From the sequence record NC_049849.1: 64,000 nucleotides of DNA. One strand, given 5' to 3'. A program made the translations under genes and the position numbers. Positions 49,200-54,110 of the stretch are shown piece by piece. The number at the start of each line of letters is the position of its first letter. Position 1 is the stretch's first letter. The notes below the pieces were generated by a model. That model made no database searches, was not told the DNA's origin, and saw only the letters and a list, made by a program, of their open reading frames with translations.

Positions 49200-49571
49200 A
49201 TGGCAACATATGATTTTCGCAGTAACAAAGTTGGGGACCTCAAGATCGGCATCATGCTCGAATGGGAAACCCAGCGCATCGTCGTTGCCAGTACCTTGAA
49301 CGTGAATACGCAAGAGCGAATTCTGATTGTGAAGGCAGCCAAGCCCGAGGACCGCGAAGACGTACAGCGCTTCATCAACGCGGCCTCTGGCGAGTTCACG
49401 GTCAAGAACAATCAGAAGTTCCTAGACACTCTTGCTGCGTACGTGGACGCCAAGTACACCGTGAAGTCGAAGAAGAACTCTATAGAATTCGACAGCGCAT
49501 CGAAGGCTCAAGCCTTCGCCAAAGCTAACGGTGCGACAATCACCAAGATCGTGGTAAAGGCAAATGGCTGA
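49200..49571 (+). CDS. hypothetical basic protein (possibly late/virion)
   Basis: Strong RBS; preceded by the late-type motif. Confidence 0.75.
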   Translation: MATYDFRSNKVGDLKIGIMLEWETQRIVVASTLNVNTQERILIVKAAKPEDREDVQRFINAASGEFTVKNNQKFLDTLAAYVDAKYTVKSKKNSIEFDSASKAQAFAKANGATITKIVVKANG

Positions 49572-50430
49572 CCATGTAATGATCTTCGACGGCAACTGGT
49601 ATCTGCATCGCGCATATTCCATTGCCGGAGAAGCTTCGCCGAAGGAAGGCGTGGCTCGGCTGTTCCTATCGTTGATTGCGCGGGACGCGTTGATGAATCG
49701 CTGCAACAAGATCGCTGTAGCCTTCGACGGCGACAACGTATTCCGCTATGCGATCTACCCCGAGTACAAAGCTAACCGCGACAAGAAAAAGAAAGAGTCG
49801 AAGAAGGACGGCAAGCAGAAGTCGACCGATGGCATCTACACCATCAGCTTGCCGTTCCTGCAATCGGTGTTGACCACGCTAGAGATTCCCTGGGTGCAGC
49901 CGCCGAAGCATGAAGCCGACGACGTGCTGGCCTCTACTGCTGTGTTCTATCACAGTCAGGGCATACAGGTTACGCTTGGTGCGAAGGACAAAGACATTCA
50001 CCAGGTGCTGCGCAAAGGCATCCGGCTGTATATCTCTGACGCGAAGCCTGAACCGAAGCTGGTCAAGCATACGACGCCGAACAAGAAATTCCAAGTGCCG
50101 TATCGAAAGATGCCGCTGTATCAAACGCTGGTCGGTGATGCAATCGACAACATCAAAGGCGTGTTTGGTCCGGCTAAGGCCAAGGCGCTGGCCTTGAAGT
50201 ACAAGTCTTTGAAAGAGATTGTGGCAGGTGAGCCAGACCTCAAGAAAACGTTGATCGTAAATATGGAGAGACTGAAGCTCAACAAGCGATTGGTGACACT
50301 CATACGTGACCAACCGTGCGAAGCTGCGAAGCTTCCGAAGAATGCGCATCGCCGCATCGCCTTCAGTCCGCAATCTCTGATCGACTATTGCCAGTACCTC
50401 TATCCAAAACAGAAAGGACTATTCGGATGA
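49564..50430 (+). CDS. 5'-3' exonuclease / flap endonuclease (PolI N-terminal, T4 RNase H-like)
   Basis: IFDGNWYLHRAY, VAFDG, RYAIYPEYKANR, EADDVLAS, DKDIHQ, LVGDAIDNIKG. Confidence 0.92.
   Translation: MADHVMIFDGNWYLHRAYSIAGEASPKEGVARLFLSLIARDALMNRCNKIAVAFDGDNVFRYAIYPEYKANRDKKKKESKKDGKQKSTDGIYTISLPFLQSVLTTLEIPWVQPPKHEADDVLASTAVFYHSQGIQVTLGAKDKDIHQVLRKGIRLYISDAKPEPKLVKHTTPNKKFQVPYRKMPLYQTLVGDAIDNIKGVFGPAKAKALALKYKSLKEIVAGEPDLKKTLIVNMERLKLNKRLVTLIRDQPCEAAKLPKNAHRRIAFSPQSLIDYCQYLYPKQKGLFG
50256..50263 (+). promoter_or_regulatory. TCGTAAATA motif (intragenic)
   Basis: Inside the exonuclease 3' end, upstream of 50427. Confidence 0.35.
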
Positions 50431-50947: not shown

Positions 50948-51024
50948 AGAAAATTTTGAATGCCGCGCTGATCGTTATCGTTTGCGCGCTTGCTTTCTAC
51001 TACGGATGGAACTTCCATGCTTGA
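50941..51024 (+). CDS. 27-aa membrane peptide (not in the ORF track)
   Basis: MLKKILNAALIVIVCALAFYYGWNFHA*; fills the gap. Confidence 0.4.
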   Translation: MLKKILNAALIVIVCALAFYYGWNFHA

Positions 51025-51421
51025 CAGCTATAACTACCGTACGACTCAAAACACCAGCGTCAACGTTCAAGTCGAGCAAGCCAACGTGCATGACGCTGCA
51101 CGTCTCTATGGCGAAGTAGAGGAAAAAGTACGTAAGTCTTTCTTGGGTACGCTCAAAGCCGAGGGCCTTGCAATGTCGCTGTACGTCTCGGTCTTCTTTG
51201 ATGTGTCTGCTGACAGCATGTACGCGGTATTCGGTACGGTCGAAGTCAACGGTAGGCGCATCTATGCGAAGGTGCCGGTCAAACAATTCGACAACATACA
51301 AGACGTGGTACTGCGCTTGCGCGATGAAGTCGCCACGCAAATCGCAAACCAACTGATGGGGCAGATTCCTAACTCTGTCGGTGTAGAGGTTCATCGAATT
51401 CTGGAGCAACATAGAAAATGA
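51017..51421 (+). CDS. hypothetical protein
   Basis: Likely start ATG 51017. Confidence 0.65.
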   Translation: MLDSYNYRTTQNTSVNVQVEQANVHDAARLYGEVEEKVRKSFLGTLKAEGLAMSLYVSVFFDVSADSMYAVFGTVEVNGRRIYAKVPVKQFDNIQDVVLRLRDEVATQIANQLMGQIPNSVGVEVHRILEQHRK

Positions 51422-51648
51422 CTGAAATCAAAATCAATGCAAGCATAGAACGTCTCAAGCGCATCATCGACTGTGAGCCGGAGATTCGTCGCCGTCTCAT
51501 CGCAAGTGAGAAAGACAACGCAGCTTGCAGTGGTGTACCCTACACGGAACCCGAAGCTCTGAGCCTCGAGTACGTCGTAGACTTCCTGCTGTCGATCGGT
51601 ATCTCGCAAATCGAGTATGCCGGACTTCAGCGTCAACTGGGCAAGTAA
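51418..51648 (+). CDS. hypothetical protein
   Basis: ATGA overlap. Confidence 0.6.
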   Translation: MTEIKINASIERLKRIIDCEPEIRRRLIASEKDNAACSGVPYTEPEALSLEYVVDFLLSIGISQIEYAGLQRQLGK

Positions 51649-52032
51649 ATGGAAAAACACACTCCTGAAACCCTTCAACGTTTGATCGACATTTCGGCTA
51701 AGTTTGAAGACCTCGGCCTCATCACTCTGACTCCGAGTGAGTTCGCTCGCATTCGCGGCCAGGTCTCGGCTGATAGATTCCGAGTACCCTACGTGCTGGC
51801 TGGTGCGGCTTTCATGAACGTAATGGTCAATGATCCTGACTGGCACTCGCTCGTCGATCCGACCACGCGCCATGAGTTCCTGATGCAAGGCCACATCTGC
51901 AACTGCTTCGGCACTTCGATCTACTCGGATGCTTATTGCCTTGAGCGCCAAGTAGCGGACAATGCCCTCTTTCTGTTCTCCGAGCGCGATGGCAATCTCG
52001 TTGCTCACAAAGTAACTTTCGTCGTAGAGTAA
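51649..52032 (+). CDS. stand-alone major-capsid-protein A-domain-like protein
   Basis: LTP..FA....V......P.VL...DPTTRHEFLMQG.....G..I.SDAY matches my recollection of the axial domain of jumbo-phage HK97-fold capsid proteins. Confidence 0.6.
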   Translation: MEKHTPETLQRLIDISAKFEDLGLITLTPSEFARIRGQVSADRFRVPYVLAGAAFMNVMVNDPDWHSLVDPTTRHEFLMQGHICNCFGTSIYSDAYCLERQVADNALFLFSERDGNLVAHKVTFVVE

Positions 52033-52035
52033 CAC

Positions 52036-52839
52036 ATGAGCAAAGGCGCCAAGAAGCAAAAGGTCGCAACCGATAACCCAAAGAAGGGAAAGACTGCAAA
52101 GGACAAACGCATTGCAGAACTAGAGGCGTTGCTCGCAGGTGGCGCAGCGCCTACTCCACCACGAAAGAAAACGTGGAACATTCTGGATATGAAGGCATTG
52201 AAACCTCTGAACGAAAATCAGAGCGCAGCCTTCGATGCTTATCGAAACGGCAAGCAAGTGATTCTTGGCGGCTCGGCTGGTGCGGGTAAGTCCACACTGG
52301 CCGCCTACTTCGCCCTACACTCAGTGCTCAATGGGGATCAGAAACAGGTCATCATTGTGCGCACTACAGTGGAAGCTCGTGGTATGGGCTTCCTACCTGG
52401 CACTGAAGAAGAAAAGCTGAGTCCGTATGAACGACCCTACAGAGAAGCTCTGGGTTTCCTGTTTGGTCGCAGCTCGACGTATGACGACATGAAGGAAGCA
52501 GGGCTCGTTGCATTTGAGTCTACCGCTTTCCTTCGCTCGGTCACGCACAACGACTCTGTCGTAATTTTTGATGAGTGTCAGAACTCAACGTTTGAAGAAC
52601 TCTATACTGTAGCGACTCGACTCGGCAAAAACTCGCGGGTGATATTCATCGGCGACATTATGCAGAACGACTTGTACATGAAGAAAGAGAAGTCTGGCTT
52701 TCCTGAATTTTTGGAAATCATGGCACTGATCCCCGAGGACTTCGAGCACATCAAGTTTACTTCCGACGACGTAGTACGGTCTGGTCTGGTAAAGCGGATC
52801 ATCAAGGCCGTCGAACGACATAGAGGTATTGGCAGATGA
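52036..52839 (+). CDS. phoH: PhoH-like ATPase
   Basis: GSAGAGKS, RGMGFLPGTEEEKLSPY, TAFLRSVT, IFDECQN, TRLGKNSR, GDIMQND, DVVRSGLVK. Confidence 0.95.
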   Translation: MSKGAKKQKVATDNPKKGKTAKDKRIAELEALLAGGAAPTPPRKKTWNILDMKALKPLNENQSAAFDAYRNGKQVILGGSAGAGKSTLAAYFALHSVLNGDQKQVIIVRTTVEARGMGFLPGTEEEKLSPYERPYREALGFLFGRSSTYDDMKEAGLVAFESTAFLRSVTHNDSVVIFDECQNSTFEELYTVATRLGKNSRVIFIGDIMQNDLYMKKEKSGFPEFLEIMALIPEDFEHIKFTSDDVVRSGLVKRIIKAVERHRGIGR

Positions 52840-53201: not shown

Positions 53202-54110
53202 ATGCTTCTTAAACCACAAAAAGATTTCAGCAGAGACTTCCTGCAAATCTACAACCGAGCACTGGTGGACACCTCAGTAGTAAGCAGACGCGATCCGAAG
53301 CGCTTGTTGAACCTGCGGTGTTCTCAACTCCCGTTCTGCCCTCTAGGTTTCTTCGTTGACGTGTCCCGCAATCCAGCGCTGCAAGCCTTGGACTTTATGG
53401 GTACGTTCTACACGCGAGTGGGCACGGCAGTTCACGAAGTGATGCAAACGGTGCTGATGCAAACGTCAGCAAAGATCGTTGGCGACTGGACGTGCGGTGA
53501 GTGCGGTCAGGTGCACAAGTTCACGAATCAACCGGAGTGCTGTGGCGCTCCGATGACCTACGAAGAAATCTGTTTCGACTACAAGGGTATCCAAGGTCAC
53601 TTGGATACCCTATTCCTCGTTTCAGGGACGATCAAGAAAGGTGAGTTTTGGGTCGTTGACTACAAGACCACATCTGAAAAAGCGAAGTCGAAGAAAGCGA
53701 AGAATCCAGGTGATGCGTACGTTGAGCAGATCATCACCTATGCGTATCTGTTGCGCAAGCAGTACGGCATCAAGGTCACGGGTGTCATGTTGGTATTCAT
53801 TCCCCGAGACAATCCGAAGTCGCCGGTCACGTACTCACGACCGATCACCGACAAGGACTTAAAGAAGCAAGCCGCGAAGCTCAAGATTTACAAGCAAGCC
53901 CACAAGGCAGTGCTGAGCGCCGAGTCGAAGTCCGATGTACTGGGCTTGCTCGACACGTTCGGTACCTGCAGCAATCCCTTCTGCGAAGTTTGCCCTAGCA
54001 GAAACCCGCGTGAGATTTTGAAGACAGCGTACAAAGCCGCCAAGGCTAAGAAGACGCTGCCTCTGCTCGACGCAATCACTAAAGCATCCACGAAAAAGAG
54101 GACGAAGTGA
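53202..54110 (+). CDS. Cas4/RecB-like PD-(D/E)xK exonuclease with probable Fe-S staple and Zn ribbon
   Basis: CSQLPFCP, GTAVHE, CGECG...CCG, GHLD, VVDYKT, QIITY, CSNPFCEVC. Confidence 0.85.
   Translation: MLLKPQKDFSRDFLQIYNRALVDTSVVSRRDPKRLLNLRCSQLPFCPLGFFVDVSRNPALQALDFMGTFYTRVGTAVHEVMQTVLMQTSAKIVGDWTCGECGQVHKFTNQPECCGAPMTYEEICFDYKGIQGHLDTLFLVSGTIKKGEFWVVDYKTTSEKAKSKKAKNPGDAYVEQIITYAYLLRKQYGIKVTGVMLVFIPRDNPKSPVTYSRPITDKDLKKQAAKLKIYKQAHKAVLSAESKSDVLGLLDTFGTCSNPFCEVCPSRNPREILKTAYKAAKAKKTLPLLDAITKASTKKRTK

Follow-up and report, generated by a model that had tools for sequence, protein, structure and literature searches.

The gene gp073 of Achromobacter phage Motura encodes a copy of the central alpha/beta domain of a phiRSL1/PaBG-type HK97-fold capsid protein, and this copy folds on its own. 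The gene is a genuine native protein-coding gene and belongs to an old, rare and sporadic family of small proteins. Motura is a jumbo myophage of 221,431 bp; "the window" refers to the stretch analysed here, the final 64 kb of its genome (NC_049849.1). Coordinates are those of the window (record coordinate minus 157431) unless the record is named.

The gp073 gene and its neighbourhood

The gene (51649..52032, + strand) starts with the ATG at 51649, ends with the TAA at 52030-52032 and has 127 intact codons. An earlier reading made from the sequence alone (the sequence-only reading) had described an intact 127-aa ORF located directly before phoH; the ORF is exact and the strings quoted from it are present in the translation. 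The next gene encodes a PhoH-like ATPase (52036..52839, + strand; Pfam PF02562, E 1.4e-45; phrog_170, E 4e-76) and starts 3 nt beyond the gp073 stop. In the annotation of NC_049849.1, gp073 is a "hypothetical protein" of 116 aa, called from an internal TTG at 51682. The description used here, a 127-aa capsid A-domain-like stand-alone protein, is based on the ORF, the capsid homology, the AlphaFold model and the GC, GC3 and codon bias. The two genes upstream are of unknown function: gp075 (50990..51421, + strand; 143 aa; weak match to phrog_37058, a family of unknown function) overlaps the start of gp074 (51418..51648, + strand; 76 aa) by 4 nt, and the TAA of gp074 directly abuts the gp073 ATG (TAA/ATG). 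No sigma-70-like promoter and no intrinsic terminator were found on the + strand from gp075 to phoH (50990-52036), and gp073 and phoH probably form one transcription unit. The whole region is a tightly packed co-directional array of replication and nucleotide-metabolism genes: 5'-3' exonuclease (49564..50430, + strand; 1.2 kb upstream of gp073, given as context only), PhoH, Cas4-like PD-(D/E)XK nuclease, clamp loader and thymidylate kinase. The structural module of Motura is ~88 kb away. The composition of gp073 (GC 0.526, GC3 0.609) matches that of the neighbouring genes; its codon index is 0.69 in frame versus 0.49-0.51 in the other two frames, and the in-frame bias is like that of the neighbours.

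A decayed full-length copy of the capsid gene was considered as an origin, the products of gp075, gp074 and gp073 amounting together to 346 aa (capsid protein, 361 aa), but no capsid similarity is found in gp075 or gp074. The three were searched piece by piece, without reading through stops. Against the capsid protein, gp075 gave a BLASTP E value of 4.9 and a hhalign probability of 0.3%; gp074 gave no BLASTP hit and a hhalign probability of 0.2%.

Homology to the major capsid protein

The major head protein of Motura, gp188 (361 aa, HK97-fold), is encoded at record positions 120209-121294, outside the window, as the sequence-only reading had supposed. Its module is canonical: protease, ATPase, virion protein, major head protein, sheath. 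An HMM built from 36 capsid proteins has gp073 as its sole match in the window (E 3.4e-14). By BLASTP, gp073 and gp188 share 31% identity without gaps (E 6e-14) over residues 27-96 of the former (51727..51936, + strand) and 222-291 of the latter; identity to the capsid protein of phiRSL1 is 34% (E 3e-13). A tblastn search with gp073 of 2.3 Gb of phage genomes returned, besides gp073 itself, only major capsid genes (E about 1e-6), namely those of phiRSL1, PhiXhv, BcepSauron, and Dickeya and Erwinia jumbo phages. The profile of the small-protein family to which gp073 belongs (see below) was aligned to that of the capsid family by hhalign with a probability of 99.5% (E 2.3e-22, 117 columns), residues 3-117 of gp073 corresponding to capsid residues 196-314. 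The capsid similarity of gp073 is far beyond chance. The earlier claim, that a homologue of the middle of this jumbo group's HK97-fold capsid proteins stands alone here, is borne out by BLASTP, HMM and hhalign matches.

Only two library families are matched by gp073: phrog_2522 "major head protein" (E 0.0027) and NCBIfam NF042927 "HK97-fold major capsid protein" (E 0.0026; 16.7 bits, under the 80-bit cut-off). Both matches are weak, in line with a fragment: gp073 residues 26-111 correspond to positions 149-232 of 280 in NF042927, i.e. 53-83% of the mature-length capsid model. No match for gp073 was found in Pfam, in PADLOC or in PDB sequence searches; no Pfam family was found at E values up to 10 for any of 6 members of the small-protein family, and a PDB sequence search with the family profile gave no hit. 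The HK97-fold assignment of the parent proteins comes from the gp188-type capsid family, which matches gp27 of phage G (PDB 6wkk, E 1e-23), and from the PaBG capsid protein, which matches HK97 in HHpred with a probability of 99.9% (PMC7412058).

A complete HK97 fold comprises N-arm, E-loop, P-domain with spine helix, and A-domain, and is not present in gp073, which covers capsid residues ~196-314 only, possibly up to ~335-350. The first ~195 residues of the capsid protein and its last ~30-45 are missing. By the order of elements in the HK97 fold, the missing N-terminal residues would hold the propeptide, the N-arm, the E-loop and most of the spine helix; gp073 is without everything that a shell subunit needs for tiling. 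The sequence-only reading had given N-arm, E-loop and P-domain as absent. This stands for the part that precedes residue ~195, but the tail of the spine helix seems to be included: the gp073 helix at residues 7-15 aligns to capsid residues ~200-208 and would be the end of that helix.

Residues retained and residues lost

The most conserved block (51856..51936, + strand), D70-P71..R74-H75-E76..G81..G88..D94-A95-Y96, is common to the small proteins and the capsid proteins. The motif that the sequence-only reading had given for this group of capsids (LTP..FA...DP..RHELL..G..G...DAY) agrees with the consensus of the capsid family. Across the alignment of 42 sequences, D70, G81, G88 and D94 never vary. 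Capsid conservation was defined by a threshold of at least 90% across 22 diverse capsid proteins: of the positions that reach it, T28, D70, P71, G81, G88 and D94 are retained in gp073, and the equivalents of W237, D249, D253, G279, R292, V298, G302 and E303 are replaced. Judged from this alignment, gp073 has kept the turn, Gly and Pro positions that define the fold, together with part of the charged block, while the constraints acting on a shell subunit are gone. The full-length capsid proteins of the phiRSL1/Motura and PaBG/Lu11 jumbo-phage groups (phrog_2522; NF042927) are homologous to gp073 over ~115 residues and share with it the DP..RHE..G..G..DAY block and the predicted fold; unlike them, gp073 is encoded outside the structural module and has lost invariant positions.

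Predicted structure and domain assignment

AlphaFold run on the single sequence of gp073 gave an unusable model (pLDDT 36). Run with an alignment of gp073, its small relatives and 35 capsid proteins, from which the row of the Motura capsid protein was left out, it gave a compact alpha/beta domain (mean pLDDT 92, pTM 0.85); since capsid proteins dominate this alignment, the model partly inherits the capsid fold. Its elements are, in order (H, helix; E, strand): H7-15, E19-26, H29-40, E48-51, H53-61, H63-66, E69-71, H75-79, E82-86, E89-93, E106-113 and E116-125. The capsid strand equivalent to the final strand (G115-E127) varies between alignments. In the BFVD database, the top Foldseek match is BFVD's own independent model of gp073 (TM 0.78), and the best non-self match is the capsid protein of Motura (E 1.1e-6; TM 0.69, query-normalised); lower matches are other major capsid proteins, including gp27 of phage G. 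Against the PDB, the two top high-probability matches are HK97-fold capsids, those of NF5 (0.98, TM 0.61) and of the CFT073 prophage (0.97), with the capsids of T5, LME-1 and Pa223 ranked below them; no match of gp073 to the PDB reaches E 1e-3. The absence of any profile or structure match to capsid proteins had been named as what would refute the capsid relationship; the claim survived, with the hhalign match given above and the Foldseek match to the Motura capsid protein. Foldseek also returned more small uncharacterised jumbo-phage proteins (from Y3 and Noxifer), which have a similar fold and no detectable sequence relation.

The A-domain of the HK97 fold is made of two main helices round a central beta-sheet and of ~100 contiguous mid-chain residues (PMC8346489). 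The model and the mapping to 53-83% of the capsid model agree with this description, and on this basis gp073 is assigned to the A-domain module, as a compact alpha/beta unit that would derive from the contiguous middle of the chain; the assignment is made by model fit and not by a domain-labelled superposition. The profile of the capsid family gave no signal against HK97 gp5 itself, so that the label "A-domain", which the sequence-only reading had used, is based on the order of secondary-structure elements and on proportional mapping.

Small relatives and their distribution

A phmmer search of 1.84 billion representative proteins returned five further small proteins that carry the conserved block: P0002 (124 aa), P0004 (233 aa), P0005 (163 aa), P0006 (152 aa) and P0007 (146 aa). 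All five are matched by the capsid HMM (E from 1e-10 to 4e-24), and so is a shorter tandem copy located downstream of P0005 (L005:2515-2802; E 1.8e-9). They are encoded on short metagenomic contigs, except P0006, which is on the 286-kb viral contig IMGVR_UViG_3300045974_000132; the capsid locus of this contig was not among the best 80 capsid loci. P0004 is longer: its residues 61-207 correspond to capsid residues 184-338 and continue to the capsid C-terminus, and its N-terminus consists of 60 unrelated residues. Three other candidates were rejected. P0003, a protein of 772 aa with five matching stretches, has Ig-like repeats and a biased composition, and its matches are spurious; L012, taken as a possible stand-alone copy, is a full-length capsid gene; and among the look-alikes given by Foldseek in Erwinia phage Y3 (first 52 kb scanned), only Y3_016 shows a motif-level resemblance, which is non-significant (E 0.07-0.12; hhalign 1.6%).

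None of 5.8 billion protein clusters, and neither the JGI metagenome contigs nor bacterial genomes, yielded a close orthologue of gp073. By tblastn, a gp073-type gene is absent from phiRSL1, BcepSauron, BCSR5 and the other sequenced relatives of Motura, and a pattern-limited scan of IMG/VR gave no other contig carrying gp073, though near-complete relatives of 215-245 kb were included. Across the loci of the small proteins, no neighbour is conserved except a 5'-3' exonuclease at two loci; the exonuclease of Motura and the one beside P0006 (L007) share 25% identity over 255 aa. The family has the signature of accessory genes: small, sporadic, fast-evolving and duplicated.

Lu11 gp106 and the origins of the segment

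A second capsid-like place in the genome of Pseudomonas phage Lu11, found by tblastn, corresponds to gp106 (YP_006382636.1). This protein of 287 aa is labelled "major head protein" in RefSeq and consists of two tandem copies of the capsid segment: residues 73-128 and 193-276 both match positions ~234-313 of the capsid profile, and the small-family HMM matches the protein with an E value of 1.5e-21. No orthologue was found in other sequenced phages. Its gene adjoins that of a head-tail connector (phrog_17327, E 5e-199), and middle/late promoters are annotated in this block. Maximum-likelihood trees were built from the ~90 shared columns of 22 capsid proteins, the small proteins and the two Lu11 domains. 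The two gp106 domains are sisters (100/98) and lie inside the capsid clade of Lu11, PaBG, NCTB and Yoloswag (99/100), whereas gp073 clusters separately with the six metagenomic proteins, branching outside the whole set of 22 capsid proteins (96/94). A single clade for all nine small-protein domains is rejected (p-AU 0.019). The motif signatures differ in the same way: DPIT(R/K)YDL in gp106 is that of the capsid proteins of its clade, and DP..RHE in gp073 is that of the phiRSL1 clade. As tree and motifs agree, the same capsid segment of ~125 residues has become a gene of its own on at least two occasions. How deep the gp073 group branches is uncertain, because the small proteins are on long branches; the Lu11 branches are equally long, yet are not attracted to this group. 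An origin of gp073 as a recent duplicate of gp188 was rejected: gp073 does not group with the capsid protein of Motura, which sits deep in the well-supported clade of the phiRSL1 group.

Since the same piece was excised at least twice in jumbo phages, gp073 probably has a use. A non-functional relic, i.e. a partial duplication of the capsid gene kept open by chance, would account for a singleton among sequenced phages, for which the searches of protein clusters, metagenomes and bacterial genomes gave no close orthologue on which dN/dS could be computed. At ~31% identity, however, a neutral remnant would have lost its native codon bias or its open frame of 127 codons. No remainder of a capsid gene is seen in the flanking ORFs, and the trees place gp073 apart from gp188. 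Other small proteins have similar boundaries, and in Lu11 the segment was cut out independently. With an undamaged native ORF, with a family of relatives and with a second excision, a relic is highly improbable.

Gp106 resembles gp073 in having the capsid segment only and in its sporadic occurrence; it differs in its two fused copies, in its independent origin within the Lu11/PaBG group and in the adjacent connector gene. In phage T4, gp24 is a vertex protein derived from gp23. Like gp073, T4 gp24 is the product of a second gene that arose from the major capsid gene within one genome; paralogues of this type keep the full HK97 fold as shell subunits, whereas gp073 is one domain and cannot tile a shell.

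A role in the capsid itself is conceivable: gp073 could be a morphogenesis factor or a minor virion protein, which caps, delays or steers capsomers or occupies special positions in a T=27-class jumbo capsid. Such a role would suit a protein stemming from the domain of penton and hexon contacts (PMC8346489; preprint 10.64898/2026.01.04.697583), and the place of gp106 beside a connector gene, in a block with middle/late promoters, points the same way. A core assembly factor should nevertheless be conserved, and relatives with the same kind of capsid have no gp073; the gene lies among replication and nucleotide genes, far from the structural module, and the residues invariant in the shell are lost. 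A function in morphogenesis is fairly unlikely.

Comparison with A-domain encapsulins

Family 4 "A-domain encapsulins" (PF08967/DUF1884; PDB 2PK8) are proteins of ~100 aa that consist of an A-domain only, are paired with enzymes and have no known function (Andreas & Giessen 2021, PMC8346489). Their hosts are hyperthermophilic archaea and a few Bacteroidetes (PMC8346489). Like them, gp073 is an A-domain of about 100-130 aa that has lost the N- and C-terminal parts, with two helices round a beta-sheet, and its gene is tightly beside an enzyme gene. It differs from these cellular proteins in being phage-encoded. In sequence, Family 4 proteins hardly resemble any capsid protein, whereas the homology of gp073 to gp188 is plain. 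The genes stand in opposite order, with the enzyme upstream in Family 4 and phoH downstream of gp073, and the partners of the small proteins vary between loci. No match of the gp073 family to DUF1884 (Pfam) or to 2PK8 (PDB profile search; top 50 of Foldseek) was found. Of the kinds described so far, Family 4 comes closest to gp073, which is likewise A-domain-only but, by sequence, is not a member of it. Unlike in the archaeal A-domain encapsulins, the clear homology to the parent capsid gene makes the route to a single-domain protein traceable. If the A-domain lives alone and arose repeatedly, it is an autonomous evolutionary module.

By analogy with Family 4, rings or facets of A-domains might serve as a scaffold that binds and stabilises the adjacent enzyme, here PhoH. 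The 3-nt junction of gp073 and phoH is consistent with this, as are the enzyme genes that directly follow P0002 (a SLOG-family protein and an acyl carrier protein) and P0007 (a GT2 glycosyltransferase). There is, however, no recurrent partner, the neighbours being different at every locus, and some enzyme neighbour is expected by chance in gene-dense phage arrays; the order is the reverse of that in Family 4, and no sequence relation to DUF1884 supports the analogy. A scaffold of this type seems quite unlikely.

Possible function

The A-domain forms the penton and hexon faces of capsomers (PMC8346489; 10.64898/2026.01.04.697583). Avs7, Avs8 and Avs10, three STAND receptor families of bacteria, are all reported to bind the capsomer-forming face of the monomeric capsid A-domain (2026 preprint 10.64898/2026.01.04.697583), and a major capsid protein is also sensed by CapRel SJ46, as reviewed in PMC13728456. 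In the Avs7, Avs8 and Avs10 systems, which are host sensors and their triggers, the sensed face belongs to the domain from which gp073 derives. The following function is proposed. The product of gp073 would be a soluble A-domain using the faces that normally make capsomer (penton/hexon) contacts, and via these faces its partners may be other copies of itself, capsid monomers or proteins that recognise the faces. As an accessory factor of phage-host conflict, it could interfere with host sensing of the capsid protein, either as a decoy (the sensor is occupied) or as a shield (the sensed face of capsid monomers is covered). Expression would be from the operon of replication genes and not from the late structural module, a timing that is deduced from gene position.

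This reading is favoured because the A-domain bears the penton and hexon faces and because Avs7, Avs8 and Avs10 bind that face. Signs of a conflict gene are the long branches, a tandem duplication (in L005) and a fusion (in Lu11), and the profile of gp073 (old, rare, sporadic, fast-evolving, duplication-prone, in the company of early/middle-type genes) is typical of accessory conflict genes and not of core morphogenesis. Two points weigh most heavily against it. For several other Avs targets, a minimal core fragment suffices to activate the receptor (10.64898/2026.01.04.697583), so that a free A-domain could be a liability and not a decoy. The loss of the equivalents of W237, D249, D253, R292, G302 and E303 argues against a faithful capsid mimic and against native-like docking. 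A soluble A-domain acting via capsomer-type contacts against host capsid sensing, as decoy or shield, is a conjecture, possible rather than probable. The broader statement, that jumbo phages repeatedly excise the axial domain of the capsid protein and that the product blunts receptors (Avs7/8/10-like or others) as a non-activating decoy or monomer shield, is doubtful. No match of gp073 was found among families of defence and anti-defence proteins, including those of PADLOC. In the literature covered (most subscription journals are outside this scope), no stand-alone phage A-domain gene, no counter-defence by a capsid fragment and no phage-encoded free A-domain modulating capsid sensors was found described. 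If the A-domain can exist alone in phages and arose there repeatedly, gp073 is a testable candidate for phage interference with newly described immune receptors that read the capsid A-domain; if the broader statement is true, a counter-defence would have been built from the trigger itself.

Finally, a stable alpha/beta scaffold may have been reused in a role unrelated to capsids or sensors. Such an exaptation would be in keeping with the deep divergence, with the loss of surface residues invariant in capsids while turn, Gly and Pro positions are retained, with contexts that vary between loci and with the fold-alikes that Foldseek gives in Y3 and Noxifer in spite of the lack of sequence relation. 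Most members nevertheless retain the charged block D70..R74-H75-E76..D94, where the capsid protein is most conserved; a preserved capsid-type interaction or salt-bridge network would explain this more easily, and an unrelated role is rather improbable. Should the function of gp073 be mundane or absent, the gene is a tidy case of domain-level gene birth from a structural gene. Two annotations can be corrected: in Lu11, gp106 is a protein of two A-domains instead of a major head protein, and in Motura, gp073 is more than a featureless hypothetical protein.

Capsid A-domain-like proteins outside Motura

Pseudomonas phage Lu11 gp106 (287 aa; L103:27480-28340, minus strand, corresponding to NC_017972.1 77477-78340) consists of the capsid A-domain segment repeated twice in tandem, the remainder of the fold being absent. 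Its RefSeq label, 'major head protein', is at odds with this double A-domain content. The gene is adjoined by a head-tail connector gene. Lu11 gp106 and gp073, the 127-aa stand-alone A-domain-like protein of Motura (window 51649-52032, plus strand), have separate origins.

Among the small metagenomic relatives of gp073, P0004 (233 aa; L006:1487-2188) is longer and comprises an unrelated N-terminus of 60 residues followed by the equivalent of capsid residues ~184 to the C-terminus. In the first tree, no other small protein lies as near to the capsid clade as P0004, which looks intermediate between capsid proteins and proteins made up of the A-domain only. On another metagenomic contig, a second, shorter A-domain-like copy (L005:2515-2802, plus strand; small-family HMM, E 1.8e-9) lies in tandem just 3′ of the relative P0005 (L005:1956-2447). 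This copy may be truncated or degenerating, since the gene called there encodes only 63 aa.

Several further small uncharacterised jumbo-phage proteins (106-154 aa) match the gp073 model over their own full length (Foldseek against BFVD, E 4.5e-5 to 1e-2), including A0A2H4IBH4 and A0A2H4IAS8 of Erwinia phage Y3 and A0A1Y0SV83 of Pseudomonas phage Noxifer. Among these look-alikes, a sequence-level match was found only for Y3_016 of phage Y3 (L016:10201-10587), at the motif position, and was non-significant. The A-domain-like small proteins may form a wider and more divergent set.

Start codon and cysteines of gp073

The deposited start of gp073 is an internal TTG (window 51682), at which no Shine-Dalgarno-like sequence was found. 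An ATG located 33 nt 5′ of it (window 51649) abuts the stop codon of gp074, the 76-aa gene immediately upstream (TAA|ATG). Use of this ATG gives gp073 11 more residues, which are located just before and within the first helix (7-15) of the model. Three cysteines (C84, C86 and C97; window 51898-51939) are clustered around the conserved hairpin. Capsid proteins have no cysteine at these positions, and only that of C86 recurs, in the metagenomic relative P0002.

Genomic neighbourhoods

On the 286-kb contig IMGVR_UViG_3300045974_000132, which encodes another small relative, P0006, the gene convergent with that of P0006 (L007:10549-11400, minus strand) has a weak DnaJ-domain match (E 8e-5; 23.1 bits, below the Pfam cut-off of 27.8). 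The next gene along encodes a 5′-3′ exonuclease; Motura likewise has a 5′-3′ exonuclease, 1.2 kb upstream of gp073, which may be a coincidence.

In Motura PhoH (window 52036-52839), a Lys-rich N-terminal extension of ~50 residues precedes the Pfam domain. The protein is most closely related to homologues from Stenotrophomonas jumbo phages CM1 and RAS14 (~51% identity) and from cyanophages, rather than to any from the phiRSL1 group, within which the Motura capsid protein falls. Motura and its capsid-level relatives therefore do not have this gene block in common. The gene gp070 (window 53202-54110) carries the annotation 'exonuclease', and its product is a nuclease of the PD-(D/E)XK type (Pfam, E 2e-10). 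This protein scores best against phrog_1706 (E 5e-25), a family that bears the label 'CRISPR/Cas system associated'; it also contains a Cys-rich stretch and matches Cas4 weakly (E 0.033).
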